DNA from: Cyanophora paradoxa CCMP329 | Lineage: Eukaryota > Plantae > Glaucophyta | Direction of reading: 5' to 3' | DNA length: 61,203 nucleotides | NCBI GenBank assembly: GCA_004431415.1 | Contig: QPMI01000592.1 | Location: 1 to 61,203 of the forward strand | In this document: positions 20,531 to 58,225 of the stretch, piece after piece | How positions within the stretch are numbered: the stretch's first letter is position 1 | How the letters are laid out: every line of letters begins with the position of its first letter | The notes under the pieces: generated by a model | What the model saw: only the letters and a program-made list of their open reading frames with translations | Told to the model about the DNA's origin: nothing | Database searches by the model: none | Made by a program: the position numbers and the translations under genes

Positions 20531-20619
20531 AAGAGCAGGATGCGAGGTCACCTGCCTATGTCATCGGCGCACCTGCGAACTTGCGTCGAGCCGATCGAAA
20601 GGATGGTGGAGACTTGAAA

Positions 20620-20678
20620 GGGGTACAGGCTCATTGCTAAACGACCGTGGGCCACGGTCGTTCGGCAGACATGGGTAC
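20620..20678. other. Structured motif copy 1: GGGGTAC-N13-palindrome-CG-N8-GGGTAC
   Basis: Perfect inverted repeat AACGACCGTGG-G-CCACGGTCGTT at 20640-20662; GGGGTAC at 20620-20626; GGGTAC at 20673-20678. Confidence 0.9.
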
Positions 20679-20914
20679 CGAATAATCAACGCGGCAGGCG
20701 GGCTAGCCTAGTAGTACGATTAAATGACAAAGAGTTAAACTGAGCGTTCAAGCACAGCATACCGCAATCACGGTCATGCACGAATGCGCGCGTTCAAGCA
20801 TGGTATTCGCAAACTCCCGGAGCCAAACAAGAGCAGGCTGCGCGCGTTCATGATCAAGCATGGTAGTCGCAAGTTCCCGCGCCGGAGCTCCGACGTCGAC
20901 GTGCCTGACACTAA

Positions 20915-22295
20915 GGGCGCTGGTCAGAGAGATGGAGACCTAAGGGAGGGGTGGGGTGCTTGAGGGTGGCGGCGACTGAGGGTGGCGGGGAGCTCGAGGG
21001 CGGCGAGGTGGAACAATGAGAATACGAGACGGGGTGAAAAAAAGGGACTTTCGCAGCACAGCGAACAGTAGTAGGGGGGCATATAGAGAACGGACGGATA
21101 GACTACTGAGGGGGGGGGAGGGGGGGCGATCTTAAAATTACGGGCGGCTGGTCAGAGAAATGGAGACCTAAGGCAGATGCAGGGGTGGTGCCCTAAAGGG
21201 TGGCGGCGACTGAGGGCGGCGGAGAGCACGAGGCTGGCGGGGCGGAGCAACGAGGACCTGAGACGGGGTGACCAGGGGGACTTTCATACCACAGAGGGTG
21301 ATGATATGACACAGGGCGGCGGGTCAGAGCGATGGAGACCTTTTTTTTTGCAAGAGCCCAACCGGGCAATGTTCGTATTAAGGACAACAACAGCCGCCCC
21401 GTCGCTTGCATCGACTGGGGGGGGCGCCTAGGCTAGCTCTGAGGCTCTGCGGAATAGAGGGAAGACGTCCTGCTATCTTATCCTAGCTGTGAGCTATCGA
21501 TCTGCGGCTTGAGGAGGGCCTGATGCGCTGGTGTCCTTGGTCCTGTGGAAAAGGAGGGAAGGGGAAGGCGAGGCGCACGGGGTGCGGGAGGTCGGCAGGG
21601 GCGAGGCGTAGGGAGGGGGAGAAGGGCAGGGAGTGGGGTACACGGAGCGCTGGAGGGTGGCGGGAGTGAGGCGTTCGAATCGGGAAGCTGAGGGGCGCGC
21701 GGGCGGGAAGGGTGACGGGCCGGGAGCGGGGCAAGGCGCTGGAGCCGGAGGGCGGGGGCGGGATGCTGGAGCAGGAGGGTGGGGGCAGGGCGCTGGACCG
21801 GAGGGCGGGGGTGGGGCGTTGGAGACGGAGGGCGGGGGCGGGGCGCTGGAGCTGGAGGACAGGGGCTGGGCGCTGGAGGCGGGGGCGGGGGCGGGGCGCT
21901 GGAGCTGGAGGAGCGATGGAGACCTATATAGCTAAGGGAGGGTGGAGCGCTTGAGGGTGGCGTGCGGCGACTGAGGGTGGTGGGGAGCTCGAGGGCGGCA
22001 GGGCGGAGACAGGGTGACAGAGGGGACTTTCACAACACAACGAACAATAGCAGGGGAGCATATAGAGTACGGTTGGCTAGACTACCGAGGGGGTGGCGAT
22101 CTTAAAATTACGGGTGGTGGGTCAGAGCGATGGAGACCTAAGGGAGGGGTGGTGCCCAAAAGGGTGGCGGCGACTGAGGGCAGCGGAGAGCACGACAGCG
22201 GCGGGACGGAGCAAGCTAAGGGGAGCCTGAGACGGGGTGGGAAGGGGGACTCTCACAGCACAACGAACAGTAGCAGGGGAGCAAATAGAGTATGA
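20915..22295 (+). repeat. About 220-bp repeat units in two clusters around a G-rich ~24-bp minisatellite (21735-21910)
   Basis: GATGGAGACCT(AAGG)-like unit marker at about 20931, 21160, 21331, 21915 and 22130; GGGGCGCTGGAG-core tandem units in the middle. Confidence 0.85.
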
Positions 22296-22303
22296 TACGT
22301 AGA

Positions 22304-23020
22304 TTACAAGACACAGAGACACTGCTGCAGATGAGGGAGTGCAATGCGAACTAGTTCATGTACAGGTAGTCTAGCATCGAGCCGTACAATCGGAATTCGA
22401 CGCTGGTCTTCCAGCTCATTAAGCCACTCAGCATACAATTTTGACAAGCCTGGAATAGTCCGGATGGTCTCTTGTGAATCTCCCCGACTGCATGCACGAC
22501 GCTGACAGAGCTCACTTGACGCATCCAGATATACTATCATAATCGGATCGGGAAACGCAAGACAAGCATACGTTTCTTGAAGCAAGTCGCGCTCGTGAAG
22601 GGTGAGATTGCCACGAGCGTGCCAGTAGGATGAGAAGATAGTATTTGAAGAATAATGACATCGCTCGACCAGGCCGATGATCGGAGGACTGCCAGTGCTA
22701 ACGCTAGCGCTGTTGGCAATCGATAATTGGCGAAGGTGATCAGCATGAGACAGTAACGCTCGAAGCTGCATGCCAAGTACAGCGCCTGGTCTAGGGCCAC
22801 CAGGCGCAAAAATACCGTCCAACCACGGCTGCCAAATATGCAGAGGCTCCGGGAATACACGAAACTGGGAGTGGCAGTTTGCTTCGACGGCTGCAGAAAC
22901 TAGCTCTGCAATGAGCGTGCTTTTACCAGCTCCCGGCGGCGCTTCGAACGATACATATGGACGCGCTGTTGCAGGCACCGGTCGGCGTACTGTGAGCGGG
23001 AAATCTACTAACGACTGCAT
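22304..23020 (-). CDS. Deoxynucleoside kinase (dNK family), intronless
   Basis: P-loop YVSFEAPPGAGKSTLI, then FPEPLHIW, MQL, LVERCHYSSNTIF, G.L...E..L, PDPIMIVYLDASSELCQRRACSRG, LSKLYAEWL, RLDA. Start taken at MQSLVD (23020). Confidence 0.9.
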   Translation of the reverse strand: MQSLVDFPLTVRRPVPATARPYVSFEAPPGAGKSTLIAELVSAAVEANCHSQFRVFPEPLHIWQPWLDGIFAPGGPRPGAVLGMQLRALLSHADHLRQLSIANSASVSTGSPPIIGLVERCHYSSNTIFSSYWHARGNLTLHERDLLQETYACLAFPDPIMIVYLDASSELCQRRACSRGDSQETIRTIPGLSKLYAEWLNELEDQRRIPIVRLDARLPVHELVRIALPHLQQCLCVL

Positions 23021-23242
23021 GGACTTAGGGTGAGAAGCAGACGAAAAAAGTGAACAGGGGTACAGGCAAAACATGGACACGTGCACATAGAAGATAGTCG
23101 CAAGCACAGCACTAGTACGCAAGCAGCGAACGCGCGTTGCAGTGCGGAACTGAATCTGAGCAGTACCGAAATAACGTCGCTGGCAAATTTCGCGGAGTGC
23201 AGCCGGTGTCACGCAGCGCACTCTGACAGGTCGGCACGTCCT

Positions 23243-23786
23243 ATGTCTGCCGGTCGCACGCTTAGTCAGTTGCAGGTCATCGACTTCAAAGTCCGGTACC
23301 CTGAATTCATAAAGGAGCAAGGGGTGCCACCCAACAAACCGGATGTGCGCTTCCCTTACCAGCTACTTCGCGCCACTGCCTCAGCGGTTGGCTGCAGCTG
23401 CTCATTATAACACGATGATTCACGAGGGGAACGAGGTCCAGCTGTTCATGACCATGTCGCCAACTACTACGTATTGGGAGCAGCTACTCGGCCTGCATGC
23501 AAACGGAATCGCGGAGAAATTGCCAGATACGGATACGGCTATAACCACATTCGACGGGAGTGGTGTCGCGACCTCTTTCCAGCAAGATCAGTACCAACTG
23601 ATCACTGCAGCTGTACCAGTCGCAGCACACGAGGACAGTGAGGATGATATGCCAGCACTGGAAATCGGCATGCCACACTTTTACATAGGGATCAACGCCA
23701 TTTCCGCCGCGACCGATCCTCCAGCAGTATACTCTCATGAGCATTCGTTGATCTGGCTAGTAGGGGCGGTGCGGCGTGAAGAATAA
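23243..23786 (+). CDS. Hypothetical protein between dNK and RepHel; 5' end uncertain
   Basis: VIDFKVRYPEFIKEQGVPPNKPD joins RLAAAAHYNT... in frame through a ~40-nt GT-AG intron; an AATAAA-like signal overlaps the stop. Confidence 0.5.
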
Positions 23787-23844
23787 AAATTCGATCGATT
23801 AAATGGACATATCGCTAAACGAGGGCATCATAGTCATATCTATT

Positions 23845-26800
23845 CTACGGTATCAATGCAGAGTAATGGTGGTTCTGTATAGAAAGTAGAGAACCGTCGC
23901 AGTGAAAGATCCCGTGGTAGAGTAGACACAAGGGACGGTGATAACGGATGAGAGGAGGGACGTGAAAAGTTCCATCAATCCCTGTGTGTATATACGGGAA
24001 ACGTCGGGAGGCACTCCTATCTTCAAAAAAAATCATGATAGGTCTACACAAGTAGGCCGAACAGAAGGCGACTTCCAGATTTGTAGCTGCACGGGCGTTA
24101 TAATGACATGAGTAGTTTCTGGTTAGTAGGCAGCACACACCGTCTGTACCGGGCTCTCGCATGCGGTTGCAGTATGCGGTAATGATATTCGCACCTTGAT
24201 TGAGACCTTGCGCGCCGTTTGGAGCGACTGGGGCGTCGGGAATTGCAGCGGAGTATAATAGGGGGTAGAAAGGATGGAGAGGACTAGTTGACATCATCAG
24301 GTCAACAACACCTGCCCGTAGTGTATCCGCAAAGAAACATTTCTCTGATTTCCGCTGTAAGACAGGGAAGGTCCCTTCAGCAGATAACCCGTCGATGATG
24401 GATAGGAACATGCAGCGGCCTGCACCAGAATTGCTGCGAATTTCGACGTATTGGAATGGAGCTCTAGATATAAATGAAAGGTCTAGATAATTACTGACCT
24501 GACAGGAACAAGGTAAGGGGACACTACGTTTGGAGGCAGCGTCCCTTGCGTTACCATGGCAGATATGCGCTCTGCCATAATATGAACCACAGAAGATTGG
24601 ATATGAGTTGAGGAAGGTGCAGCAGGGACAACAACAGTGTTGGTAGAGTGGAAGACAGCATGAACGGGAGGTGCGGGACCACTAGAAGCTGCATGTGCAA
24701 AAACCGAGTCCAGACGGCGAGGAAGGAGATCATGCGACAAGAAGGGGACGGTGCAGGGTGTAGATGGCGAAAGTAATGGACCCAGGGGACGGACAGGGGC
24801 ACTAGAGGAAGAAACCGGATGAGAAGTGTGGATAACTGACGTAATCGCAGTTCCAGCTACGTTGGCCCGTTTCGGACAGGATGAGGTGACCGAATCGTTT
24901 AATTTGCGTTTCGGTGTCACAGGGGTTGGTTGTGAACTTGAAGCAGGGGCGTTTGTAGAACCCTGTTTCTTCGGGGTACCAACTTGTTTTGATGATCCGG
25001 AATTTGCAGCTTTGAGGCGATAGTATTCCATGACTGACGGCGGCTTGGCAACTGGCATAATTGAAGTTCCCCACAATGCGCGGCGATCTGACGTTGGTAG
25101 GCCGATTGAAGACGACAGAGTCCGAAGGCGTTCCTGTTCCCGAATATCGCAAGGGTTCGGAGCAAAGTAAAGCCATCGATCGCAAGTTGTGTTCGAATCT
25201 ATGATGGCATCGACATCCGATACATCAGACTCGCCGCTGCTCGAACATATGGTCGCCAATGGTACAGGTACCCGCTTGGATTGGCGTCCAGGTTTTCGTG
25301 ACTTGGGGTCGCGTAGGACATGGGTGAATATGATATCCGCTGAAGATCGAACGCGACTACAGGCTACATACGCCATGTTATACGAGAATGCACGTGCAAG
25401 GTCAACCACGATCTTGGGCAAGGTCAGGCCTTGGCATTTATGGATAGTAACAGCCCATGCTAGTCGAAATGGGAACTGTGTACGCGATGGCGTAGGGCTT
25501 GTGGTCTTGGCCTCACTCGTCAGGGCGGGCTGGGTTTCATGTTCCGGCTGGTCTGAATTTGGCGTTTCCTTTGCATGTACAACAGGCTCATTCGAAAGAT
25601 CGCGTTCGGAAGGCTCGATTCGTACAGCCTGGTAGTCGACACCTGCAAGCGAAACTTGGACGCGTCCTCGTTTGCGACCGACCTTGTCATCGTCGAATGC
25701 GATGTACAGTGCGACGGGTGCATTCTTGTCCAAGATTCGGACCGTTGAGGACGACAGTGGAACTGGACCATCGAACTCCCAACCAACCAAGGTTCCGAGG
25801 GCTCCATTAACCAGCCCGTCGTGTGTATCTTCATTGATGATCATCATTACACGTGAGCCGAGACAAAAAGTGAACTTGGCTGCCAACAGATCACTCTGTT
25901 TATTCTGCAAACTCCAGACTGAGACAAGAAAAAAGATATATAGATCGAACATGGAACAAGCCACGCACGTCAACAGGATCAGCTGGCTTACATGTTTTCG
26001 CCTTCTTGTCGTATTCACCCTCATCGAAAGCCTCCAACGTGATGATCGGTGCTAGGTACCGATGTGATGTTGCGAACAGGCGAGTCTGATTGTAGGAAGC
26101 AACTTCCCTGTTACAAGGGAACACACGCAATGCATTCTGCCAAGCAGGAGAAGACAGCTCAAGCTCCAACTGCGCATACCCTCGGCGATTTTCCTGAGGG
26201 TCAACGGACCTAAAGGCCCACGGTATTTCAGCACGCTTCAAACTCCTACTTGAATGACGCAGACAATATGTAGTCACACCTGGACAGCACGAGACGTTTA
26301 TCATTATCGTGGAATTCACCGACACGCAGTCGCAGACAGGTGTCACGCCACATCGTATCACCAGCTTGCCGGACCACTTCGTCGAGAAAAATGGGATGAA
26401 ATAATGAAAGCCATAGATGGATATCGTCGATACGGTCGGCATCTTGCTTGAACGTACGCCACATAAGAGGCGACAAAGGACTGTAAATCCGCTTCTCCCG
26501 GACAGGAGGTAGCTGAAAGAAATCCCCGAAACAGATTACGGATTTTCCAGCAAAAGGAGCATCGATCTGAAAGATCTCCTGCAGACGCTGATTGACACGC
26601 GGGAAATTCTTGCCACCTATGAAGCTGATCTCGTCGATGATGATAAGTTCGACGTCCCGGAACTTTGCATTCAATTGGCAGGCTCGTTGTCCAGACAGAG
26701 GGTAAAACGTGTCCTTTGCGCCGTCTTTAGGAGGGGCACCGAATGCCAGAAGAGTAGAGACGGTGCTACCTCCAATGTTAAACGATGCAACACCAGTCCA

Positions 26801-29800
26801 GGACATGAGCAGAACCCCTCCGTTGCCACACGGTTGGGCCATGTTGGCATGATCCCGGCTCCATTGCATCATATATTTTACAATCGTCTTGATTAGGAAA
26901 GACTTCCCTGTACCGCCTGGTCCGACACACGCCACATGTAAGGGTAGTTTGGGAGAGATGGCAGGGAGTTCCACTTGTCGGCAAGCTGGCATCCCGGCAT
27001 TCGCAGCTAGCTTTGCATTGTAACTATGCAACCGGAACCAATCAGGTCATTATAATAAAAATAACGAAAGCCAGCACACTCGGATTGAGAGGTGTAGTGT
27101 TTTTCGAGCCGACTAGTCATTTGACGGACGGCAACCATCAGCTCCCGTTGTCGGGGCTTCAATTTCGTTTCCATGTCTGGCAGGCTCATTGAATCAAGAT
27201 CATGCAAATCGACACTTGAATTCGACGTAGCCGGGACGGGTGGCTGAATCGAACTAGGTGGCTCAGAGTTGGCCGCCTCTGGTTCCGAAGGGATAGCAGC
27301 CGGTGCAATGTTTGGTCCACCACCTTGCGCTCCCGCAGGAGGAACGGAGTCATGAGGGAGCATTTCGGCATCGACCCCCTGGACTCCTTCGGGTGCACGG
27401 GGTCGCACATGGGACGTGGATGATGCTGTGCCAGTGGTCGAGCGATTATCATGGTGCAAATCTCTCCCAGCAGCCAATCGCGCATCCCTGTCGAATTTTT
27501 GGAGAGATCGTTCGAGACGTGCAGCCATATGACAGTGAGTAAACTGTATGTTGTACTCTATAGTTGCACGGTGACGGATGACGGCGGCGGATATAACTTC
27601 TGGAGTAACGTCATCCTCAGACTCGACCCCCAGCAGATCGCGCAGTTCGTTCCGGAAAGGGACATGCATAAAAAGAAGACTGTACAAGCTGTCCGGATCG
27701 CCATCCTTCGGAACCCGAACCCGAATTGCGCGCGGTCGACGACGCTGTTGCAGCACGTGCCGATGGAAAGGTTTGCCCATCGAGGTCCGTGGACACACGC
27801 TGGTAACGGAAATTTATGATTACCAGTTGTGTGAAATGCAAGGATCCGATTAAAAACAAATATACCCGGAGGCAGCAATTTTGGGTCGAAGTGGTGCTGT
27901 TGTCTGCGGATGTTGTTTCCGGATAGCCTCATTCGACCATGCCGGATTCGGCTCCCAATCATTCAAATTAGTGCCATTGTCCATTCCATCGCAATCCACA
28001 TCCTCGCTTGTGAGATTCGAATCAGGGCCGGCGCCCTTTGGGGCATCACCAAGGAAATGTATGTTGAACCAATTCATGTACTGCATGAATGTCAACGATT
28101 CGAATATAGGTGGCGCATCTAATACATCCATCAGTTCGAACGGTCGTAAAAAAACCACCCCGAAAGCATGCACGTACCAGCAGGGTCTTTGGTGCGAGCC
28201 ATATAATAATCGATCTGATCGTCGGCCCATGCATCTTGATCTTCAGGATTCTTCTGCATCCTGAATTCAAGATCTTTTTTACGACGCAGATGTTTGGTGC
28301 GCTTCGACGGAAGATAAGCCCCCACTGAGCATGATGTCCTTGATGAATAAAATAAAGGGAGACCTGCCAACAGAAAATGCATATTCAGGTAAATCAAAGT
28401 GGAATGATACAATTCAATTAATTCGAAGCCAAGGAAGTATAGGGTACAGACCCAGGCAATATAATCCTGCTTCCTGTTTCGACATTGTCCGACACCCGAG
28501 CATAGCATTACGCATCTATATGAGGGGTCCCGACAGTCAGCGTCATGTGTAGCAAGGAATCCAGGCACGCGATGCAGCATGCCTTCAGAAGGATCTGATT
28601 AGTCGACGCCTCATCCGGCAAGTCGCTCAATACGGCCTCCACAGCTTTCATCTCCTCCGTCTCATCCTTAGTCATATAGCCGAGAATATACGCGGCTATC
28701 TTGTAAGGGTTCGTCACTACTTGAATATCCATATTGGCCTGCCAGAGCTGGATGATGACGTCGTGAAAGTTATTCGTGTAACGATCGTCCTGCGTTGTTC
28801 GCCGGAAGATCACCTCCTTGTCACCACGGCACATAAATCGCTCTTCATGCGAACTCCGCAGATGAGTCTTAGAAGCAAACACCTGGGGAAATCCGAAGCG
28901 ACATTTACAGCGCTCCTTGTATTCCGCCATGAACTTCGCAATGCGGGCAGAACGGGCGACGTGCTCAGAAGGTGCTGCTTTTTCCATAGCGGCCAACTGG
29001 TCGTCGAGGACGCTATTGCGGGCCGAATCCGGAAGGGGGTCATGTAGTTCCGCACTGTCATCTACCGTAGGCAATTTCCGATGACGTCGAAACTTAAAGG
29101 AAGCAGCAGGATCGATCCTGCAAGTATGAGAGTGTTTATGTCGATTGAAACGGGCAACGTAATTCTGTAAACGAGGTGTTGCCCATGGTTGAGCGAAAGG
29201 CCCTTCCGTTCGAGGTTGCTGAAGTTGAATCGTCGGTTCGCGTACACATGAACGGGGGCAGAGTAAAAAATGAGGAAATCGAATGACTCACCTCGGTTTT
29301 GACGACTGTATCAAGCCACTCACAAACTTGCTCGGCATTGAACGTGGGATCCGAAGGGTCCAAGTTCGGTGGCGGTGTTGTCACACCATCTCGGATGCGC
29401 TCACCCAACCAGATTACCAAATGAGCATGCAGCGATCCACGACTCTGTACCTCATACCTTCGATTACATTATTGGCGAGAATTAAGTACGGTATGAACCT
29501 AACCGCGAACCGGACAAAGAAATCAACCACCGGCCAACCAAATAAGACCTCCCCCGCCTCCGATTGGAAGAGATCAAGCATGGCACGGACACGCTCGTCG
29601 AAATGTTCAGCCACGATTCCAGGGTTATCGTTCAGCAATTTAACAACCTCGTCACGATTCGCAGTGAACGCCGTTACATCTGCACTGGACCGGAAACGAA
29701 TAGGATCGATTGCACGCAATAAGTCCGGCCAATGAAGGTCGTCGCTGGAGAGAGTCATGTAGATATGAGGAAATCCAATCGTAGTGAACATGCTGTGTAA

Positions 29801-32106
29801 TTTATTTCTCGCGTTGATCCAATACGCGGCTGTACCGCGCACCTAATTGAACACCACTTTGGTCAGCACAGCAGAGGCAGTAATATATACAAGGGCAAAG
29901 ACGTGAACGTGCGTTACGTGTCATTGTACGGTAGCACCGCGTACGAATGGCCAAAGCGTCGAGGGAATGGTCTTCCACAGTACTGTTTATTAAATTTAAT
30001 GCGTCGGCAACAGTCAAGGGGCATTGGAAGCGACATTGTGGGTGTCACGATTATCGGTTGACATAGCATTGACTATATGATCCCGCACAAAATTGAATCC
30101 ACGCCATGCATCATCATCCAATATAATTGACACGGAATTCAGAAGAGCAGCAGGATCTCGCTGGAAGGGAGCAGATGATGCTGCAAGGCATCGGTGTGAA
30201 AAAATTCACGGGCCGTGAGTTCGATTGGCCTGGCGGGATCATGCAGGCCGTGCGTGCCTGAAGTAACTAACTTAATCTCGGGCGGCACGGTTTCAAATAG
30301 CAAATAGCTTACCTGTAGGATAAACTGACAAGAAGGAGCAGACGTCTGTTTCGGGCGCATGCGCACGGATAATACGGCCGGCGTTTACAGGGAGAGTGCT
30401 AAGCGAAGTTCCTTTCAGATTCACGGCGACAGAAGGGCAGATCGGACGGTTCAGAGGCGAGGAGTCAGAGACTCCGTCATCCGAATCATCACTATCCGAA
30501 TCATCGGCCTCGCGTGGGTTAACGACATTGTCAGTAGTTCCAGCATTCCATTTCTCAATTTCGGCCAGTAGCTCGGGATCGGTTGGATCACGCAATAGAA
30601 TATTCTGATAATACAGGTGCTTGGTGGTATTCCGCAGGCATTCGAGAACTTCGAAGCAGCGATCCAGCCTAACGCGGTTGTACCAAGTCTCTCCACCTTT
30701 CGGCTTTCGTTGATTCACCAAGCAAACCTTCCCTCTTGGTGGAAGTGGGAAAATTGCTTTGATATTGTTGATGGGGTTGCAGGGTACAAAAATCACTCGT
30801 CCTTGAGAACCTAGTTGCCCTCCACCCATCCTGCGACCATTCTGCCCTTTTGGTCCTCGAACATGAATTAACTGAGATAGCATACGAAATTACATGACGG
30901 TAAATGAGAGTGACAAATAGATATCACCTGATAGTTATTAACCCGCTGACACATCAGCAATTCCGGTACGTTAAATCAGACAAAAGACGTCGCGTACTTT
31001 CATCGACCTCCACACAGTGCAGACGATTCTGGACAAAATCTGCTTTAGCCGGGTGTGTCGATAAGTATCCAATAACACATACCAAGCGCGAGAAGGGGCA
31101 GAAAGGTCGTTCCGGAGTGCATTGAAAAGCATGGCACCGGGTACAAAATTCGACACTTGCCTGATCAACGGGTATTCCATGCAGACGCAATACTGAACAC
31201 GGTTGACAGCACACATCTGTAAGTACACACTGACAACTCGATTCATGATGTCGTAGCGGTGAAGCATTCCCAGAAGACACACATTGGCAGCGAATGACAT
31301 GCAATTTATCTGACCGCCTTGACTCTGTGCAGCAGCTACACAGTCGCCGGATGCAGTATAGCTTGAGAAAAAATAACCTGGCAGCATCCTTTAATGCTTG
31401 GTTTGAAATCTCGTTCCAGAACTGAATCGGTTCATAGCTGATGCAAGCATATGCATGAGAAGTAGACGTGCGTACACGGAAACGCAAACTTACTCGGACA
31501 ATAAGGTGGCGAAATCCGTGTGAAGTTCCAAGAGACGTTCAGTCTTGTTGCGCCTGCTACGACTTGCACTCTTCGCGTGTTCCGAGGGTCTGAGAGGATT
31601 CGACGCATGGCGAGCTGCAGGAAAAATAAAACAGAGATAAACGGACATGAAAAGAAAATTCAAATGTCACCCCGCACGTACCCGAATCATAATCACGCAA
31701 TAATTGCCTGTCAGAGTCAGGGAGCGCATTTCTCAGGCGACCACGGTACGAATTCTCTGAAAAAGCGCCCGTCATGCCAGTTCACTAAGGGTTGCAAGTT
31801 CTAATAAACACTCACTTGTTTGTCTGCTAGGCTGGGTCGATCGGTGAGCTATAGACCGATGGGCCTCCCAACAAGGACGATCAGCGAGTACGGTGCCACA
31901 CAGACCACATGGAAATTTGTCGTCCAGTGTAATATCGTGGGCACCAGCCAAGTGGTATCGCCATTCATTCTCGGTCCGAAATGCAGCCCTGCATGAGGCG
32001 GCACCGACACAACGGTACGCAAACTATAAAAAAGATGCACGCAAATTAGCGAGAGGCAAACGGTCCGAAACAAAAATACCACTTGCATGTTGAGCTGGGG
32101 TTGCAT
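23845..32106 (-). CDS. Helitron-type RepHel transposase: 2x C2H2 - DUF6570-like - HUH/Y2 Rep - PIF1 helicase - OTU protease; many short introns
   Basis: C2H2 fingers YRCVGAASCRAAF...YHLAGAH and FPCGLCG...AHRSIAH (about 32015-31843); GQLGSQGRVIFVP; RGTAAYW...GFPHIYMTLSSDDLHWPDL; HUH motif EVQSRGSLHAHLVIW (about 29453-29409); CRFGFP; NMDIQ...AAYILGYMTK; PIF1 motifs GPGGTGKS, IIIDEIS, GDFFQLPPV, VVRQ, GLVNG, RTQFPFRLAWAVTIHKCQGLTL, AYVACSR; OTU GAGRCMF...HHYSAL. Start approximate. Confidence 0.95.
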
Positions 32107-33912: not shown

Positions 33913-36095
33913 CTATTTCGTCGACGACCTCGAAAGGGTGGTAGCCGGCTCGTGACCGAGACATCTCTTCGACGAGGACGGTAATACGAAGCGCGAGCCG
34001 GGCGGATCGATCGAGGATGGCAGCGAGAGTCTCAGAGGCGCCCATGGCTGCCGCGTGCACCGCCTTGACCGAATCCTCATCGGCCCACTGGATGATGTGA
34101 GAGGCACGGTTGCAGATGCTGGTGACCGACCGGAGCCCCTGCTGTATGTCGCCACAAGGCCGCTGCGCTGAGACCGAGCAGCGAGAAATGCCTGGAAGTG
34201 GCCGGCCACCGCGCGCGTCACAGTGACAACTCCAGCGACCGATGGCGTGTCGTAGAAGACCTCGGCGAGACTGTTGGACGCACCGAACGCTGCAGCAGCT
34301 GCAGAAGCTGCATACAGTGGAATACGGCGGGAGGACAAGAGGAGGCCACCGACAAGCCCGAGAGCGGCAAGCGAGGGCAGTTGCGGGCGACTTGTGCTAT
34401 AGAGCTGACCAGAATGCCGTGCACTTCAGGCGCGGGGCCGCTATAGGAATCACGAGGCGCTCGAGGGTGTCCGATGAGAGGCGCATAGCAAAGTCCGATA
34501 CGAGACGCGTATTGTACTTGTGATCGAAGATGCGATGAGCAGAAAGGTCGAGGGATACAAGATATTTGAGATTGTGGATGAGGTCGGCGACGTGGATGAG
34601 TTTCTCGGCAGCACGGGGCTGCGCAGAACCTCGAGGGACCACGGTAGGTAGTTAACATCTATGCACCCGCCGGGTACTGACGGGATCGAGTTCTCAAAGT
34701 GAGTAATGTGATTCTGCAGATGGTCGTCCATCCACTCAAAATCAAACAGACTGCGGAGATTGACACGCATGGTTGACGGGGCCGCCACTGCCGGCGACGG
34801 CACCACGTGCGTGCGCGAAGCCCATGACTCGTAATCACCAAAGATGTCGAAGCTGACCATCGGAGAGTCGCACTCAAATGTGATCTCGACGGGCGCTCGC
34901 AACAACGGAGGTATGAAGTACAGCCCCTCGTGTGCATGACCCACGGGAAGGGACCCTCGGACGATAACCGACCGAGCATCGAGCCGCGACTCGACGAAGT
35001 GACAGCTGTTGGTTGCGCACTGGTACGCAATGGCGCCCGTAGATATCTCGAGCCGGTCAAGGAAGAACGGACCAAGGGACCAGCCTCCGAATCTGCGACG
35101 AGTGCATGTGATTAAAATGCAGGATCACTTGTAAAAGTAGAACAGGAGTAAATTTCGCTGTTGCTTCAAAGATACCAGCGATGAGACGGCGAACCTATCA
35201 ACATAGCAGGAGCGGGGGCAGTGGTGCCAGGCAGCGGCAAAGGCTTGAAATGCAGAGCGTCCAGGCCTTCGAGCTCATTGGATGCCAGATCATCAAAGAC
35301 GAGCACCTTGGCCGACGTGTTCTTGGCGACGACGTACCATTTGCCGTGCACGGGGCGCGCGTTCCCCGGGTGGGCGGCGCTAGTGGACAGGGCGAGTGAC
35401 CACTGATCTGCCGGGATGGCTGCTGGCCCATCGAAATCGGAAGGCCGAAAAGATTCGTTGACGATAACGTCCAAGAACTTCGCGATGTACGGATGCCGAC
35501 GGGGCGGGACGTCGAAGATGCGCGATACGACGCGGAGTAGGCTGCTCTTGCCAGAGAGGAGGTGGTGGACCCAGCGACCGAGGAAGGCAAGAATAGGCGC
35601 GGTGTGCTGTTCACTAGAAAGGGGCTCCGCAGGGTTGACGTAGCCGACGTCGCGGAGCGCCGCGTCGAGGTCGAGAACGACGCCGCGCTTCCCGTGATAA
35701 GGGACCACGGACGACGACGACATGAAAATACTGCGGGCCCGCCGATGCGTGTGTGCGAACGCCACAGCCGAACGGGGGTCTGATCCGAGGTGACGCATGA
35801 TTTCGGCCATCACCAGGTCTGGGAGCCCGTCCAGAGGAGAGAACCTGGAACGGATAGTGGTCGTGTGATAATCAGTCCGTACGCGCTCAGCGGCCGGAGG
35901 TGGTCGGGTGCGGGCGCTGGAGGCATAGGGTGGGGTAGAAGCAAAGAGTGCAGTCTGGAAGCGTGGGGCCTGGGCTTGAGGGTGACGGGGAGTTGAAGGG
36001 GGCGGCCGGGACGAGGAGCTGGAGGGCAGCAAGGGAAGGGGTCTGGGTGCGGCAGAGCAGGTTGATGGAAGACTCGGCCCGGGCGGGGCGAGCAA
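33913..36095 (-). CDS. F-box/LRR-like protein, copy A (frameshifted)
   Basis: SPLDGLPDLVMAEIMRHLGSDPRSAVAFAHTHRRARSI is F-box-like; downstream SLEVLRSP, YLVSLDLS and TLERLVIP repeats. Paralogous to 38998-41214. Confidence 0.65.
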
Positions 36096-38997
36096 AGACG
36101 ACGGGGCGAACAGCGGAGCACAGGAGGGTTTGAAAGGCCCATTTGGAGTTTCGGTGAGGGCTTTAAACTAATATTCGAAGTACAGTCCAACAGTGCGCAC
36201 GTGCACGGCTCCGCGGCCGCCGGAGCGACATCCGGATCCGCCGGGAAGACTCTCGCTGGATCTTCAGAAGGAGGACACGCCGTGCCAGACGTAGAAGCAG
36301 ATACAGGGGCATCAGCTGAAGAGAACCTGCTGAGCGATGAGCACAGCCGAATTTCGGACAACCGTCTAGCTGCATGCGCCATGCTAGCTGGATGCACGTG
36401 CGCACCCAATCGGCAAATCCGGAGGTGATGCAGCTGCTCCTGCAGATGGGGCATCTGTGGCTCACCTAAACGCAGCTGCAGATCCATGGGGGACAGAATA
36501 AAGGGCGGACCGGGCAAGCTGTTCGTAGTGCGATTCGCAGGTCGACCACGCTTTGAGGGAGGCCTGCGAGCGAGATTGTGCAGCGTGTCGAGACGGACTG
36601 AGCGGTAGGGCGCATGGCGGGGCGCGCAGCGTGCAGCGCACCCTACGGGGACGCGAACATCGGCGATGGATTTGCTTCAACGTCCGTCGACTCCGTAGAC
36701 TTCGGTTTGCAATGGCGGGCCCTGCGGCAACGAGAGTAGACAAAGTACATGAGTGCGTGCGGAACAAGACGAACAGGCCCGATTCAGGCGCGCGGGCACC
36801 GAGTCTTCACCATGACCGCGCGTCCGATGGCTACAGGTGAGAACGGCCGGGCGACGGCAGATTTTTGTAATATGCCGATCAGCCGCAGAGGAGGCCTGAT
36901 TAGCACGGGGGGGTATCATTAAGGCGGCAAAACTGGCAATAGAAACCGGCTGCGATCCGGCGGCGAAACAGCCGTAGGGAGAGCAGACCCACCTGTTAAA
37001 TTGGACGGGTACGTGCGGCCAGGTAGACATGAGCCGCCGATGATCTGCAGATTCGTGCACAGTCGCTGACCTGGCTGTAAGCGCGACGGCGAAGCGCGAG
37101 CTCGGCGCCTGCAATAAAACTACATGGAAGGATGCGGTGCTACATCTGGTGACCCCCAGGGTGCGGGCTGTCACACGCACGACCGGCGAAAGCGCGCGCC
37201 GCTGTCAGAGGAAAATTAATTCGGTGCACAAACAGAGTACACGATTGACACGGAAGATCACAAGTTCCCTTCGGAAGTCCCAGTGATGCGGGAGAGCACT
37301 TCGCGCGCAGCGCCGACTTCCGAACTTGGCACAACGGACAATACGGTGACTGTGTACGTTCATATATGGCTTCCGAATAACAAACATTCACTTATAATAA
37401 TGCTCAGGATCGAAGAAGCACGAGAAAGCATCGATAATTCAAATCCATCGCCAAGCCACGTGACGACCTCGACGACAATTCTGGTGGGTATATACCCTAT
37501 AAATCAGAAGTCATGTGGATATGGTGCACTAAACCAAATTGTCATGTCAGCCCCGCCCCGAATTCTGCAGCGGCGGCTACTTATATAATAAAATATATTT
37601 GACATGACAGAAAGCACCGCAGCCCCCTAATCAACAGTCCTATAGCTAGTAGTCTTCAGACGAATCATATCCACATACATGGTCATCGTAGCAGTCCATT
37701 TCATTGCAGCAGAGACGATTGCAGATTTCGCCGCGGTCCTTGCCGTGTGTAAGGTCCTCTCCTGGCGCTGCTGGTGGTGCATGTCTCTCATTCCTGGCAC
37801 GAGGATCGCCGTATCCCGATAATGAATGTTCCGCTTCAGAATCCGCCGACAGCGTATAACTGTGTGATTGGGCAGAAGGTTGTGACAAAGAAGTAATCAA
37901 GCGCGCCCATGCGGGCATGAGCCCATGTTCGATCGGTACAGACATCGCATTTTATCATCTCGCTGCTATGTTCCTCACAGTAGAGGCTGCACAACAAGGG
38001 CGTCAGCTCCCGTCAGATATGTTGGTTTTGTGAGTAGGGTTGCAATTGAACACTTAAACGTCAGATATACACCACGCGAACCTGCCACAATCTTCCGATG
38101 AGCAACGGTATACCGTATGCTGACGACCGCAAGTACTGGCCATGGAGGGTTCGTGCAAGTCGTCATTGCAGAAAAGAATAGGACAGCCAGTGACGGATGA
38201 ACACTGAGCAAGCCGGCACGTTCGTGCGGGTTCGAGCGGGCATGGGCCGTGCATACCGTCGATGGCAGGCACGGTCCGTACGCATGTGCACACGCGACGG
38301 CAATCTCATCCCGGAACACGCTGCAGTCGAAGTAGGAGGTGGAACGGCTTCAGCTGACGGCACCATTACTATATGCTGGATCGAAATAACGTACCCCAAA
38401 CGGGTACCCTAGTCGCTTCATGGCTCAGATCCATACATGACCCAGGCTCCATGCATCTACTTAAGCTTGCCTGCGAGCATGCCGGGCTTGCCGCCCGCTC
38501 TTCCTCCGCCTAGCCCCCGCCCTTGCCCTTTGCCCCCCTGCCCGGCCCCCGCCCCCTCCTCCCCCACCGCCGCCGCATCCTCATCGTCCGCGGTCCTTGC
38601 CGCGCGATATGAGAATAGCGTACATACACATAGCGGATGCAGACCTGGATTAATCAGTCGTCGAGTACTACCACATCCAATTTCAAAAGGGCTATATAGT
38701 CCCAGGGGGCTTGACATATACTTGCACATCGCGCCTTAAAAGCTTGTATAGATAATCACATGATGTGCCATGAGGAGAGTGTACAACTGAAGAGAGGGTA
38801 CAAATTGCATCACGGGAATGGCACAAGTCACGCAGGAGGCAATAAACAAGTACGTGTGTACTGAACTAGCGACCGATAGTTCAAGCAGTTGATATATCTG
38901 AAGCGTAAAGGATGTCAAGTGCGTGGATATGCGAATCACGTAGATACACATAGCCGGGCGCATACCTGGGTTGATCAGTCGTCGAGCTCGAGGTCTA

Positions 38998-48230: not shown

Positions 48231-48239
48231 CGACAAGCA

Positions 48240-49480
48240 AGTGAGCAGGAAAGCGCATGGGACGAACGCGGTCGACGTCTGCGTCACGCGGCCGGCCGCA
48301 ATCATGGGTAGAATGGAAGACACATCTAAACCCTCAAAATATTGTAGCATAGGACGTCGAATGCGTAGATCAAGCAGTTTCTCACGAAATACTTTCCAGT
48401 GTCTTGTGCACATATTCTGGCTTAACTGTACGTTTAGATCAGCAGGCGCGTCGATTTCGTCATGCTTCCGCTTCCTCGAAGTAGAAGGATTCGAGTTGAC
48501 CGGAAGATCCGTAGGGAGAGGAACGAAAGGCTCCAAGTCTGTGATTGTAATAAATCGAAATATCAGCACAACGAGACATATAGGAATAAAAGATAAACAC
48601 ACTCAGTTTCCACCGAAGAAAATCGACTCTGACGAAATAACACAACGACGCAAGCATAAAAGCCCAACCAGTCTCGAGTGTTCAATATACAGTGCTGTGA
48701 GGACAGCAATGTCGTTTCCGTTGCGCACTCTCGAAGATGATCAGAGATGTGTTTGCCGACGTTGAACACAAGAGACGGCACTTCACCATCGATACGGACG
48801 CCAGAAGGAAGGGAAGGGGACAAAACAGGATGAAACATAGTCGCGATAGACTCCCCGACTTTACGAGCAGTATCCAAAACTGCTTTCACCTCGGAAATGT
48901 TGGCTGAAAAAACTCTCGCCATCCGCTGGACCCTTGAAACCTCTTGTGTGAAGATCACCGATGTCTGCTTGTTAGCAGAAAGATCTGAAGTCCCCTCCAC
49001 AATTGCTTCCGCAACGTGTACAGATCCCATGCCATCTGCAGGAGCACCACAGGCACAATCAATAATAAGAAAGGTACAGCCATTAAGGTGAGCACATACC
49101 ACATCACTGTCGTTCGATTTTGGTTGAGGAATGTCGATATCGTGCAACACACGTGCCTTCGTTCATCGTTAACTACAAAACAAATAATAAAAGGGGGAAC
49201 GTACCGCATCAGAACCCGATGGACCCTGACAATCGGAAGATTCAGCAGGTCTCTGAGAACCATGCTTAAGGTGAGCACATACCACATCACTATCGTTCGA
49301 TTTTGGTTGATGATTGTCGATATCGTGCGACACACGTGCCTTCGTTCATCGTTAACTACAAAACAAATAATAGAAGGGGGAACGTACCGCATCAGAACCC
49401 GATGGACCCTGACAATCGGAAGATTCAGCAGGTCTCTGAGAACCATGCTTGTTTCCCTTCTGTCTGCCCGCACTACTTCC
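48240..49480 (-). CDS. Hypothetical protein region (ORFs 48563-49150 and 48063-48602)
   Basis: Overlapping minus-strand ORFs in a lower-GC island; SRKRKHDE is NLS-like. Confidence 0.4.
49083..49450. repeat. Near-perfect 183-bp tandem duplication
   Basis: TTAAGGTGAGCACATACCACATCACT at 49083 and 49266. Confidence 0.95.
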
Positions 49481-52636: not shown

Positions 52637-53457
52637 CGCTAATAGTCAATATAAAAATCTCTTGCATTAGCACACAACACAACTACAATGAGTTTCACAT
52701 CGCCCAATAAATCTCTCCGACTAGATACTATCGAGGACCGTCGTATGCTGTGCTTTAGAAAGTACAAAATGAACGAAAGGTTTGAAGGTTTCGTGTCTAG
52801 ATATCTAGCTAAGGAGGTTTCTAACTAATACTAATGATGTGGAAGCTAGCTGTATCGATTTCTAAACCAACCTAAACTCCCGGCTACGAGGTCCTATCTC
52901 TACAAAAGACTCCCAATCATGGTATGTCCGCCGCCAGCGCTGCCCAAGGGCCTCGCCGCGCCGTGTGCCAGGCTCCTCGCCAGCCCCAGTAGATTGGGCT
53001 ACTGGCCGCCTCCTGCCGTCGCCTCCGCCGCCTCCATTTGTTGGTGTTGCGTCCTCCGGCCCGCCCCAGACCGCAATCCCCCAGTGTCTCCCTCTAGCGC
53101 GGGCGCGCCCTCTGTGTGCCCACGCCCAAGCATACCTGTTCGTATGGTCGTATACTTGCATGGCCGCTGAAGCCCGGACCCAGCCGTAGTCGTCTGGCGG
53201 GCAGCTCAGGTGTGAGAGGGCTAGGGTTTCCCCGCCTTGGTGGCGGGACTCGAGGGCACCGCACTCCCTGCAGCGTTCCCGCTGCCGGGGCTCCGGATCC
53301 GCGCGCTTCCTGCGAGCGTTGCCAGCCGTATCGTCAGGCGGCGCGTCGGCCTCGCGCCCGCGCGCCTCAGTGCGCTTCGCCTTGGCGCGACGTTCTTTCA
53401 TGACCTTCGTGATCCCGCACGCCTTCTCCCACTCCGCGTACGCGCTAATAGTCAATA
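52637..53457 (-). mobile_element. About 790-bp insertion flanked by a 15-bp direct repeat; probable 5'-truncated non-LTR retroelement or retrocopy
   Basis: CGCTAATAGTCAATA at 52637-52651 and 53443-53457. The minus-strand ORF is open from the right junction to the stop at 52862, followed by an AT-rich tail. Confidence 0.65.
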
Positions 53458-54519
53458 GGTGGTCTCTAGCACCGCATGCGCAACTGACTAACCGCGGCAG
53501 TTACGGTTGCATGCAACTAACCGCGAGACCAAGGGCCCCAAGTCCAAACATTACGACCGGCGAGCGACGATAGATGTAGAGAAAGCGTGCACGTACCAAG
53601 CACTATGATCGTTGCTTCTAGGACCCAGCCGAGCCACGGACGACGCAAGCCCGGAGCGATGAAGCTGGCGCACGAACGAAGCACGCCTGGCCAAGCCAGG
53701 ATAGCGGGACAGCTCTTTCCACTTGAAGCCGAGCAGGCCGCGAGGCCACCGCCCGCGGAAGCTGATCAGACTTGAGGCCAGGCACGCCAGCGCCACGCCA
53801 GGGATTGACTGATGTCCGGGTACAAAAACAATGCAGGAGATCAAATTCTACGGCCTTAGTGGCGCCCGTACGCGTCGGACGCCGTCACTTAAAAGACTGC
53901 AGCACTTTAAGCACAGCCACGACAGTACGGCGCTGGCCTCGACGACTCTCGCGCGCGCGCCGAGCCTAGCACAGGAAGGAATCCCGCCGGCACCCTGGCC
54001 GGCGCCACCACCAAGCCGCACAAGCGGGACAAAAAACATCACTAACAGACTCTGAGACCGGGCCGGGAATCAGAAAGGCCGGCGCCGCCGGTCGCAGCAG
54101 CTGATACGACTTCGACGTCGACAGACAGCAGCTTCATTCAAGACAAGCAGAGAGTCCAACGCCTAGATCCCTGCCATGAGCAGCAAGAACAAATTCAACA
54201 TGCAAATACAATGACATACACACACACAGCTACCTAGGCGCGGCAGGGCGGGGGGCTGCGCGGCGGAGCAGGGCGGCGGACCCGGTGCAGGCAAGATGGG
54301 TCCACGGCGGATGCGAAGCGCAAGCGCGGCCGCCCGGCGGATCCCGGAGCTGCTGCAAGCAGAAGCGGGCGCAGTCAAACCGGGGCAGCTGGGGACGGGG
54401 CGGCAAAGGAGCGGCGTCGCGGGGCGGCCCTGCCACCTGTACGGGGGCCCGGATGCATAGCGTCGTTCCAGGGGCACAAAGTTGTAGGGATGGAAGGGAG
54501 AGGAGGGGGGGGGGGCGAG

Positions 54520-55520
54520 GCCTAGGGCTGGGAAGCGGACGCTGGAAGCCTAGGGCTGGGGTGCGGGCGCTGGAGGCCTAGAGCTGGGGCGCGGGCGCTG
54601 GAGGCCTAGGGCTGGGGCGCGGGCGCTGGAGGCCTAGGGCTGGAGCGCGGGCGCTGGAGGGGGCGCGGGCGCTGGAGGCCTAGGGCTGGGACGCGGGCGC
54701 TGGAGGCCTAGGGCTGGGACGCGGGCGCTGGAAGCCTAGGGCTTGGCGCGGGCGCTGGAAGCATAGGGCTGGGGTGCAGGCGCTGGAGGCCTAGGGCTGG
54801 GGTGGGAGTGGTGGGGGGGGGGGGGGGGGGGAGGGGCGCTGAGGTTTCATTAACGTGAGCGATGCGCGTTGCATCCTGCACATGGCGTCAGCGGATGCGG
54901 GCAGCAGGGGGTACAGACGCGCGGACCAGAGGCCAGAAAGCTCGAGAGACTCGAAGACCGAGAGGTGCGCGAAGGCCGAGAGGTGCACGCGCCTGATTGC
55001 CTCTCCCGTCCAGGGCATGCAGCCCCTCCGGCCTGCCACCTGCACGGGGGCCCGGGTGCCTAGCGTCGTTCCAGAGGCACAAAGTTGTAGAATTGGGAAG
55101 GGAGAGGGGGGGGGGGAGGGGGGGGGGGGGGGGCGAGGCCTGGGGCTGGGGCGCGGGCGCTGGAAGCCTAGAGCTGGGGCGCGGGCACTGGAGGCCTAGG
55201 GCTGGGGCGCGGGCGCTGGAGGCCTAGGGCTGGGGCGCGGGCGCTGGAGGCCTAGGGCTGGGGCGCGGGCGCTGGAGGCCTAGGGCTGGACGCGGGCGCT
55301 GGAAGCCTAGGGTTTGGGCGCGGGCGCTGGAAGCATAGGGCTTGGGCGCGGGCGCTGGAGGCCTAGGGCTGGGGCGCGGGCGCTGGAGGCCTAGGGCTGG
55401 GGCGCGGGCGCTGGAGGCCTAGGGCTGGGACGCGGGCGCTGGAAGCCTAGGGCTTGGGCGCGGGCGCTGGAAGCATAGGGCTGGGGTGCAGGCGCTGGAG
55501 GCCTAGGGCTGGGGCGCGGC
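54520..55520 (+). repeat. 24-bp G-rich minisatellite in two duplicated blocks, plus a short block at about 56372-56480
   Basis: (GGGCTGGGGCGCGGGCGCTGGAGGCCTA)-type unit reiterated; each main block is preceded by AGCGTCGTTCCAG.GGCACAAAGTTGTAG and a G-run. Confidence 0.95.
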
Positions 55521-57900
55521 AACGATACTGCGGGCGGAAGCGGGCGCACTCAAATAAGAAGGATGGAAGATGTCGCGCCAATGCGCGACCGCCCGGCAGC
55601 GCTGCTGCAGGCGTAAGAGGACGCGATCAATTCGAGGGAGCGGGGGACGGGGCAGCAGGACAGTGGCGTAGCCGGACGGCGGACCAGGCGCAGGCGAGAG
55701 AAGTCCACGGCACGTGCGGGGCTCGAGCGCCGGCGGCCACCGAAGCTGCTGCGGGCGGGAGCGGGCTCGATCAAATCGGGGCAACGAGCCGTCAGGGCGG
55801 TAGGAGAGCGGCAGAGCCAGGCAACGAACCCGGCGCAGGCAAACTGGACCCACGGAAGTACGGGGAGCGAGCAATTCGACCGGCGGCCCTGCTGCGAGCA
55901 GGAGCGGGCATGATCAAATCATAAGAACATAGGACGGCGCGGCAGGAGAGCGGCGGAGCCGGCGGCAGACCGGTGCAGGCAAGAAGAATCCACGGCGGGT
56001 GCGAAGCCCAAGCGTGGCCAACCGCCCAGCTGCTGCAAGCAGAAACGGGCGCGATCAAACCGGGGCAGATGGGAAGGGGCGGCAAAGGAGCGGCGTCGCG
56101 GGGCGGCGAACCCTGCGCGGACGAGAAGAGGCCGGGCGGCGGACCAGGCGCAGGCGAGAGGAGTCCACGGCACGTCCGGGCCCAAGCGCCGGCAGCCACC
56201 GAAACTGCTGCGGGCGGGAGCGGGCGCGATCAAATCGGGGCGACGAGCTTCAGGGCGGTAGGAGAGCGACGGGGCTAGGCAGCGAACCCGGCGCAAATCA
56301 TAAGGACGAGGGACGGCGCGGCAGGAGAGCGGCGGAGCCGGGCGGCGGACCCGGTGCAGGCGAGATGGATCCAGGGCTGGGAAGCGGACGCTGGACGCCT
56401 AGGGCTGGGGTGCGGGCGCTGGAGGCCTAGAGCTGGGGCGCGGGCGCTGGAGGCCTAGGGCTGGGACGCGGGCCCTGGAGGCCCTGGAGCGCGGGGCGGC
56501 GAACCCTGCGCGGACGAGAAGAGGCCGGGCGGCGGACCAGGCGCAGGCGAGAGGAGTCCAAGGCACGTCCGGGGCCCCAGCGCCGGCGGCCACCGAAACT
56601 GCTGCGGGCGGGAGCGAACGCGATCAAATCGGGGCGACGAGCCTTCAGGGCGGTAGGAGAGCGACAGGGCTAGGCAGCGAACCCGGCGCAAATCATAAGG
56701 ACGAGGGACGGCGCGGCAGGAGAGGCGGCGGAGCCGGGCGGCGGACCCGGTGCAGGCGAGATGGATCCACGGCGGGTGCGGGCCCAAAAGCGGCCGCCTG
56801 GCAGCGCTGCTACTAGAACGCGATCAGTTCGAGAGAGCGGGGACGGGGCGGCAGGACAGTGGCGTAGCCGGGCGGCGGACCAGGCGCAGGCGAGAGGAGT
56901 CCCACGGCACGTACGGGGCCCGATCGCCAGCGGCCACCGAAGCTGCTGCGGGCGGGAACGGGCGCGACCAAAATCGGGGCGACAAACCGTCAGGCGGTAG
57001 GAGAGCGGCAGGGCCAGGGCAGCGAAACCCGGCGCAGGCAAGCTGGACACACGGAAGGTACGAGGCGCGAGTGTGGTCGACCGGCGGCCCTGCTGCAGGC
57101 AGGAGCGGGCATGATCAATCATAAGAACAGGGGACGGCGCGGCAAGAAAGCGGCGGAGACGGGCGGCGGACCGGAGCAGGCAAGATGGGTCCACGGCGGG
57201 TGCGGAGCCCAAGCGTGCCGACCGGCAGCGCTGCTGCCGAGGGAAAACAACGCGATCAATTCGAAGGAGCGGGGGACGGGGCGGCAGGACAGTGGCGTAG
57301 CCGGGCGGCGTACCAGGCGCAGACGAGAGGAGTCCACGGCACGTGGCGGGGCCCGATCGCCAGCGGCCACCAAAGCTGCTGCGGGCGGGAGCGGGCGCGA
57401 CCAAATCGGGGCGACAAACCGTCAGGGCGGTAGGAGAGCGCAGGGCCAGGCAGCGAACCCGGCGCAGACAAGCTGGACACACGGAAGGTACGAGGCGCGA
57501 GCGTTGTCGACCGGCGGACCTGCTGCGGGCAGGAGCGGGCATGATCAAATCATAAGAACGGTGGACGCACGGCAAAGAGCGGCAGAGACGGGCGGCGGAC
57601 CCGGAGCAGGCAAGATGGGTCCACGGCGCGTGCGGAGCCCAAGCGTGGCCGCCCGGCGGAGCTGCTGCAGGCAGAAGCGGACCGGATCAAACCGGGGCAG
57701 ATGGGGAAGGGGCAGCAGAGAAGCGGCGGCGCAGGCAAGCTGGACACACGGAAGGTACAAGGCGCGAGCGCGGTCGACCGGCGTACCTGCCGCAAGCAGG
57801 AGCGGACGCACTCAAACCGGGGCGGATGGGGACGGGGCGGAAAAGGACCGGCGTCGCGGGGCGACGAACCCGGCGCAGACGAGAAGTGGCCCTGCATCAG
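55520..57900 (+). repeat. Complex higher-order GC-rich repeat array (~420-bp periodicity with shuffled subunits)
   Basis: Recurrent GGCGGACCAGGCGCAGGCGAGA, GCTGCTGCGGGCGGGAGCGGGCGCGA and ATGATCAAATCATAAG; a related copy lies at about 54250-54430. Confidence 0.9.
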
Positions 57901-58166
57901 CGGCGGCGCTGATGCAGGCAGACAATCACCTGATGACCATTAAACGCAGAAGCGCACAAACAGCAAAACCGCCGCTCACCGTGGAACAATCGGCCGCATA
58001 TACGCGACTTCCGCGCCGCTGCGGATGGTCCGCGCTGCCGGCGATCGCTCCGGGATCACATCCTTCGATCGATCTGCGGCGGACAACATGATTCGACAAC
58101 CACAGCCCAACCTCACACTTGAGGCCGGGCAGGCCCGACCTCACAAGGATCACACCGCGTAACGGG

Positions 58167-58225
58167 GGGGTACACTACCACAACCGAACGACCGTGGCCC
58201 ACGGTCGTTCGACGAGGGGGGGTAC
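58167..58225. other. Structured motif copy 2: GGGGTAC-N13-palindrome-CG-N8-GGGTAC
   Basis: AACGACCGTGG-C-CCACGGTCGTT at 58187-58209; GGGGTAC at 58167-58173; GGGTAC at 58220-58225. Confidence 0.9.

Follow-up and report, generated by a model that had tools for sequence, protein, structure and literature searches.

Paired GTAC-framed hairpin cassettes in a Helentron/HLE2-type block of the glaucophyte Cyanophora paradoxa

Gene Content and Base Composition of the Locus

The window, that is, the whole 61,203-nt stretch of Cyanophora paradoxa CCMP329 DNA analysed here, held one RepHel gene, which was encoded on the minus strand, was split by introns and lay between two hairpin cassettes. The RepHel exons were searched separately. 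Pfam matches to Helitron_like_N and PIF1 in co-oriented exons corresponded to a Rep domain (HUH, two tyrosines) and a PIF1 helicase, and Rep motifs 1–3 were intact. The Helitron_like_N exon with Rep motif 1 was located at 29417–29842 (Pfam E = 1.4e-12). The exons with HUH motif 2, carrying the Helentron/HLE2 serine (EVQSRGSLHAH; 29139–29468), and with Rep motif 3, carrying two tyrosines (YILGY; 28511–29287), were recognised by their motifs. They were followed by the PIF1 helicase exon, in which both Walker motifs, A and B, were present (26249–27046; Pfam E = 6e-17) and by the C-terminal part of the helicase with a low-complexity tail (24486–26051). An OTU-like protease frame was found at 23848–24681 by eye from its Cys and His boxes, without a Pfam match, and a deoxynucleoside kinase (dNK) gene at 22307–23020 (Pfam E = 5e-12) closed the gene series ahead of cassette 1. 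Beyond cassette 1, the genes resumed with an EXO5-like gene with introns (17508–19474), which was multi-copy like the RepHel side. All of these features were on the minus strand.

Upstream of RepHel, a duplicated block of orphan and F-box-like genes (33918–41499, minus strand; 33918–36360 vs. 39023–41499, 74% identical), other orphans and mosaic satellites extended as far as cassette 2. Weak F-box-like and SP-RING matches were found to the left of the EXO5-like gene. An earlier note on this DNA had listed RepHel-OTU, dNK and F-box genes as cargo of the interval between the cassettes. RepHel and dNK were supported by Pfam and OTU by motif only, whereas the F-box genes of the interval had no Pfam match; the only F-box match was weak, fell below the curated cut-off and lay outside the interval (10756–11259). 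The recognisable genes were all on one strand, apart from a reported SUMO-like pair, and the closest relatives of EXO5 and dNK were C. paradoxa gene models. The GC content of the gene regions of the window was 0.51–0.55, compared with 67.6% for the C. paradoxa genome (PMC6704402), so neither cassette borders ordinary host DNA. Judged by this composition, all 61 kb resemble foreign or mobile DNA.

In Rep motif 2, the residue after RG was serine, as in HLE2, and the leucine of HLE1 was absent. This serine is diagnostic of Helentrons (PMC4067079), and most related loci had SP at the same site. By its protein motifs, RepHel is of the Helentron/HLE2 type. Its helicase and Rep relatives were distant, mostly 25–60% over local stretches, and none of the proteins of the window was present in the exact-match collection. 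Six helicase relatives (L002–L007) carried DUF6570, a marker of HLE2 (PMC11417382); in the window frames, neither DUF6570 nor an AP endonuclease (EN), which like OTU are optional markers, was detected. The helicase–OTU fusion loci L003–L007 were ~13 kb long with canonical HLE2 ends, and one of these distant HLE2 relatives, L005, showed a head-to-tail joint. The GTAC-framed hairpin was found in none of the 74 loci with related RepHel genes.

Structure of the Hairpin Cassettes

The cassettes were re-found at the positions claimed in the earlier note, 20620–20678 (cassette 1) and 58167–58225 (cassette 2). Cassette 1 comprised GGGGTAC, a 13-nt spacer, an 11-bp stem with a 1-nt centre, CG, an 8-nt spacer and GGGTAC. 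Cassette 2 had the same layout with a 13-bp stem and, on both sides, a perfect direct repeat of 12 nt (58164–58175 and 58216–58227), compared with a direct repeat of only 6 nt in cassette 1. The matching stems and spacer lengths that had been reported were likewise confirmed: 11-bp stems were shared, the GGGTAC boxes were in register, 52 nt from start to start, and the centre base was G in cassette 1 and C in cassette 2. In direct alignment, 42 of 59 positions matched, both GGGTAC boxes included. In inverted orientation, the cores matched at 26 of 26 positions, the centre base too (20640–20665 vs. 58184–58209). The inner half-sites (20652–20665 and 58184–58197) formed a 14-bp perfect inverted repeat, and each was the best match of the other among the half-sites over these 14 nt.

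Both cassettes are genuine and well beyond what chance would produce. Even with three mismatches allowed, the stem pattern occurred only twice in the window and in none of 100 shuffles, and the cassettes were the only perfect hairpins in the window with at least 10 bp and a loop of 1–3 nt. Both were predicted to form stable single-stranded hairpins (z between -2.5 and -3.2). The word GGGTAC was over-represented about twofold in the window (35 observed, 18.5 expected). When the surroundings of the cassettes were compared, nothing aligned outside the cassettes, and the four flanking arms were mutually unrelated, with no shared motif family. Simple duplication as the origin of the pair was ruled out, because spacers and flanks differ. 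Rfam and ARAGORN gave no structured RNA or tRNA match, and collections of metagenomes, viral genomes and prokaryotic genomes contained no exact match to the core pattern.

At each cassette the order on the minus strand was the same: cassette, then mosaic satellite, then gene cluster. Cassette 1 was followed by mosaic arrays of 20-nt and 56-nt repeats (19830–20500), and cassette 2 by mosaic satellites of 28-nt and ~142-nt units (54234–57906). Between dNK and cassette 1, dispersed units of ~200–230 nt and a 27-nt array occupied 20890–22320. Repeat arrays, which the earlier note had described as G-rich and placed beside both cassettes, flanked cassette 1 on both sides and cassette 2 on its left side only.

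The cassettes conformed to neither of the known end rules. The hairpins were followed by GTAC on both strands and not by CTRR, as is the 3′ hairpin of HLE1, whose 5′ end is TC and which inserts in AT. The short asymmetric terminal inverted repeats (TIRs) and separate 3′ hairpin of HLE2 were not seen at these sites either, and the only convincing inverted match was the palindrome itself. No separate conserved hairpin or TT target was found after cassette 1. HLE2 inserts into TT or T runs without duplication, and no T run lay alongside cassette 2. Between a cassette region and the far side of RepHel, no other TIR of at least 14 nt was found, except one match at chance level.

Copies across Cassette 1

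Contigs from four sequencing runs, three of DNA and one probably of RNA, were placed on the cassette 1 region (18200–23600). On the EXO5 side there was one unbranched contig, with depths of 450/150/422 in the three DNA runs, which was 4636 nt long, ended at 20462 and extended to ~15830. The dNK side, from ~21890, was likewise one unbranched contig, with depths of 418/158/378; the contigs of the two sides were 4.6–4.9 kb each. A diverged EXO5 paralogue, whose coding distance fitted the Cyanophora gene model P0242, had depths of 82/29/86. If this paralogue is assumed to be single-copy, the ratio is indicative of some five copies, nearly identical to one another, on either side of cassette 1; copy number is measured poorly by contig depth, and the equality of the two sides is a firmer point than the ratio. 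The depths leading into and out of the cassette 1 site were also alike (587 and 646). Contigs of independent runs entered from both sides, which ruled out an assembly artefact at this site.

A sister subfamily (subfamily B; depth ~223–238/73/198) tracked the window from ~20438 to ~22150, including the repeat units between dNK and cassette 1. It shared both flanks of cassette 1 at ~89% identity, that is, with ~11% differences plus indels. To the left of the cassette, 11 substitutions and 18 gap letters were counted in ~97 nt; to the right, a burst of changes started at 20681. Between them was an island of 115 nt (20566–20680; bubbles ended at 20595 and began again at 20651) in which subfamilies A and B had no listed difference, and its right edge was 2 nt beyond the cassette. 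At the rate of the left flank, the chance of a difference-free 20566–20680 was roughly 1e-6. The site was unchanged while its flanks differed by ~11% plus indels, which indicated that it is under constraint. This agrees with the proposal of a protein-recognised site linked to the HLE2-type RepHel.

Cassette 1 is therefore a constrained site and not a border with unique DNA. Two types of flank were seen on each side of it. Among the loose ends listed (324 more lie beyond the list), none started at the cassette, none gave a third path and none was an empty site or a circle junction; an outer end with unique flanks was not seen. The earlier note had proposed cassette 1 as a candidate end of a ~37.6-kb element, a proposal that homology among copies ending elsewhere would refute. 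No break was found at cassette 1; homology and equal depth run on both sides in two subfamilies, and this part of the proposal is not supported. Its other version, matching ends of two neighbouring elements, holds only if the units are co-amplified or in tandem.

Possible Origin and Role of the Cassettes

We consider the chances about even that the cassettes are terminus-type recognition sites of the HLE2 transposase at the joints of co-oriented modules within a composite or tandem giant rolling-circle block. Transposition by rolling circle begins with a nick at the left end, from which the transposase copies as far as a right end (PMC13085455). Cassette, satellite and gene cluster, read on the minus strand, would be the left, initiating end of a module; the 115-nt conserved island, which starts at the cassette and continues in the coding direction, may be read in the same way. 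RepHel would bind the hairpin in the unwound strand, nick at or near a GTAC box 12–13 nt from the stem foot and copy onward. The roles of the hairpin as binding site and the GTAC box as nick site are suggested by the spacing from hairpin to CTRR in canonical Helitrons. We infer RepHel binding, the nick position and the polarity, together with all that concerns the flanks of cassette 2.

A start site that lies internally would leave the copying unstopped, and read-through would amplify the RepHel module (20680–58166) together with the EXO5/SUMO-type module to the left of 20620. Read-through of an internal left end has been used to explain FoHeli composites with several 5′ termini (PMC5148889), and at cassette 1 it would lead to equal copy number on both sides. 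Equal depth would also be expected from plain segmental duplication. With RepHel remaining linked to cassette 2, the co-amplified stretch would be no shorter than about 42 kb; it would probably reach 58 kb or more, if it takes in the entire low-GC left arm. Against the joint-site explanation, the layout fits the ends of neither HLE1 nor HLE2 and is absent from the 74 related loci, and it would still have to be explained why a start site that is simply read through stays constrained. In a variant, one cassette would be the fused right-end/left-end junction of head-to-tail copies, and this would explain the constraint better than a read-through start site. A more speculative extension, to which we give a low probability, is a virus-like rolling-circle element of at least 60 kb built of exchangeable modules, in which the short inverted arms at the module ends abut across one base and so rebuild the hairpin, and RepHel both copies the block and recombines the modules.

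Other explanations were also considered. The cassettes may be the two ends of one ~37.5-kb element, with a 14-bp TIR or palindromic subTIRs, that inserts only into cognate half-sites. The sole RepHel sits between them, their cores match at 26/26 positions in inverted orientation and each inner half-site finds its best match, of 14 nt, in the other; palindromic Helentron subTIRs have a precedent (PMC4067079), and 14 nt falls in the TIR range of HLE2 in HELIANO (PMC11417382). We nevertheless regard a two-ended element as doubtful. In both subfamilies, homology and depth go on leftwards past cassette 1, which is followed by no TT target or second 3′ hairpin, and neither an empty site nor a circle junction is among the listed loose ends. 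Besides, the same boxes at the same spacing in the outer halves would be left unexplained, and the element would require both insertion into cognate sites only and co-amplification with the left module. A role in transcription control, as a promoter, enhancer or insulator heading a gene cluster, with a dimeric protein at the palindrome and phased GTACCC boxes, is unlikely. It would account for the minus-strand gene cluster after each cassette, for the twofold enrichment of GGGTAC and for a probable subfamily B RNA contig that ends at 20602, just past cassette 1, and runs towards EXO5. However, the RNA evidence consists of one unstranded contig of low depth, a satellite and more than 4 kb separate cassette 2 from the next gene-like frame, and a perfect stem of 11–13 bp exceeds the need of most transcription-factor sites.

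A role in shuffling gene modules, either as a site for site-specific recombination or as a tiny REP-like mobile hairpin targeting GTAC words, seems quite improbable. The centres of tyrosine recombinase sites are 6–8 nt and those of serine recombinase sites 2 nt, unlike the 1-nt centre here; the frames that were scanned included no recombinase, the two cassettes do not share their spacers as copies of one insertion would, and only two flank types per side were seen at cassette 1. The inverted arms, which abut around a centre base that varies, the four mutually unrelated flanking arms and the 12-nt perfect direct repeat of cassette 2, which resembles a target duplication, would nonetheless suit such a site. 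Finally, the minus strand of cassette 1 reads GT...AG over 66 nt, as would a short hairpin-containing intron with the word GTACCC(C). This is very improbable, as no AG closely follows the second box of cassette 2, neither cassette is flanked by coding exons and no RNA joint was seen across cassette 1, where RNA coverage is nearly nil. The cassette is a real cis-element under constraint, undescribed in the literature covered, and it lies within a giant HLE2-type block of recent amplification.

The ends of Helitron-like elements are what they are detected and classified by. This block breaks both known end rules, and current finders would thus misplace its boundaries; by default, HELIANO covers 10 kb on either side of the transposase (PMC11417382). 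For a glaucophyte to harbour a cargo-rich, recently amplified HLE2 block, with genes for dNK and EXO5 and of the ubiquitin/SUMO type, would widen both the size and the host range of rolling-circle cargo elements. Recognition and nicking by the HLE2 transposase were inferred from sequence only in the papers cited here (PMC5148889, PMC11417382, PMC4067079, PMC13085455), and the 59-nt cassette is a ready substrate for studying both. The module exchange described above, if true, would be an integron-like use of an HUH transposase, which has not been described in eukaryotes. A literature search on Cyanophora Helitrons, giant Helitrons and GTAC-framed ends, which covered mainly open-access papers, found nothing relevant.

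Comparison with Known Rolling-circle Systems

The block shares with HLE2, including FoHeli of Fusarium and HelenXT233 of Xenopus, the motif-2 serine, two catalytic tyrosines and a neighbour that is OTU-like by its motifs. Composite HLE2s resemble it further in hairpins tied to module ends, in directly repeated non-identical termini and in gene capture (here EXO5 and dNK). Such composites can carry multiple 5′ termini in direct repeat and can contain tandem self-insertions (PMC5148889), and the left end of HelenXT233 is doubled, its two versions being directly repeated but not identical (PMC11417382). The block differs from HLE2 in that asymmetric TIRs with a separate 3′ hairpin and a TT target were not seen, in its 23–27-nt palindrome framed by directly repeated GGGTAC boxes and in that no DUF6570 or AP endonuclease was detected. 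In addition, the repeated termini are 37.5 kb apart here, but typically <200 bp apart in FoHeli composites, where whole elements are 5–11 kb (PMC5148889).

HINE/Helentron elements of mite and Culex also carry one palindrome near both unit ends, with tandem repeats inside the ends, and Helentron subTIRs may be palindromic (PMC4067079). Their subTIRs are 12–15 bp and their true ends lie in T runs, whereas homology passes the palindrome here (PMC4067079). The Helitrons of Paramecium are similar in their large size, their several alternative termini and their mosaic satellites beside terminal sequences, satellites beside Helitron termini being known (PMC13085455). They belong to a separate clade and have CCAA ends within telomeric repeats (PMC13085455); no telomeric repeats were seen in this block. 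As in HLE1, the hairpin is ~10–13 nt from a palindromic tetranucleotide, but this is GTAC instead of CTRR and stands on both sides of the hairpin, and Rep motif 2 departs from that of HLE1.

The origins of CRESS viruses and rolling-circle plasmids have a loop of 9–12 nt with the nick site and directly repeated boxes near the stem. The 11-bp stem and the nearby repeated boxes of the cassettes are alike, whereas the loop is 1–3 nt here, and we take this likeness as a lead only. By analogy with these origins, two direct copies of the cassette could release a unit circle.

Probable Introns in the EXO5-Like Gene and Upstream of dNK

The EXO5-like gene to the left of cassette 1 (17508–19474, minus strand) differed in length from its low-depth paralogue. 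Across the stretch at 18620–19023, the window had 402 nt, whereas the contigs of the DNA and RNA runs gave 214 nt for the paralogue, and this shorter length agreed with the coding length of P0242, a Cyanophora gene model related to EXO5. Judging from these sequences, the EXO5 copy of the element appears to contain introns that are absent from the low-depth paralogue. Two explanations may account for this difference: the introns were gained following capture of the gene, or they were lost in the paralogue.

On the other side of cassette 1, a probable GT..AG intron of 57 nt was located upstream of the dNK gene (23024–23080, minus strand). Contigs of the probable RNA run ended at 23081 and 23022 and showed no differences from the window, which suggested that this region was transcribed and spliced. 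A second dNK-like family was detected by contig alignment at ~10–12 times the baseline depth (that of the EXO5 paralogue, assumed to be single-copy), and it matched both conserved dNK motifs (window 22745–22957). In addition, a Cyanophora gene model on tig00000492 carried a dNK fragment with 57% identity.

Sequence Features of the Window

The word GGGTAC occurred 35 times in the whole window against 18.5 expected, an approximately twofold over-representation, with 24 occurrences on the plus strand and 11 on the minus strand. Cassette 1 was flanked on both sides by a 19-nt direct repeat (20526–20544 and 20824–20842; 95% identity, 298 nt apart). At the satellite edge, ~250 nt inside cassette 2, lay a hairpin (57891–57918) whose perfect 12-bp stem enclosed a 4-nt loop; no counterpart of it was found near cassette 1. 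An orphan region contained a recent 183-nt tandem duplication (49083–49450), the copies of which were 97% identical.

In the left module, Pfam returned weak matches, under the curated cut-off, to SP-RING (zf-MIZ; 4028–4360) and an F-box-like domain (10756–11259), both on the minus strand. Plus-strand SUMO-like frames, searched against Pfam as single exons, gave no relevant match.

Comparison with Related HLE2 Elements

The loci L003–L007 (~5130–18540), which encode distant helicase relatives of the window RepHel, represented a multi-copy HLE2 family of ~13 kb from a metagenome assembly. The OTU was fused behind the helicase, and the TIRs were asymmetric and of the canonical kind. In L005, the element was directly followed by the 5′ end of another, in a head-to-tail arrangement.
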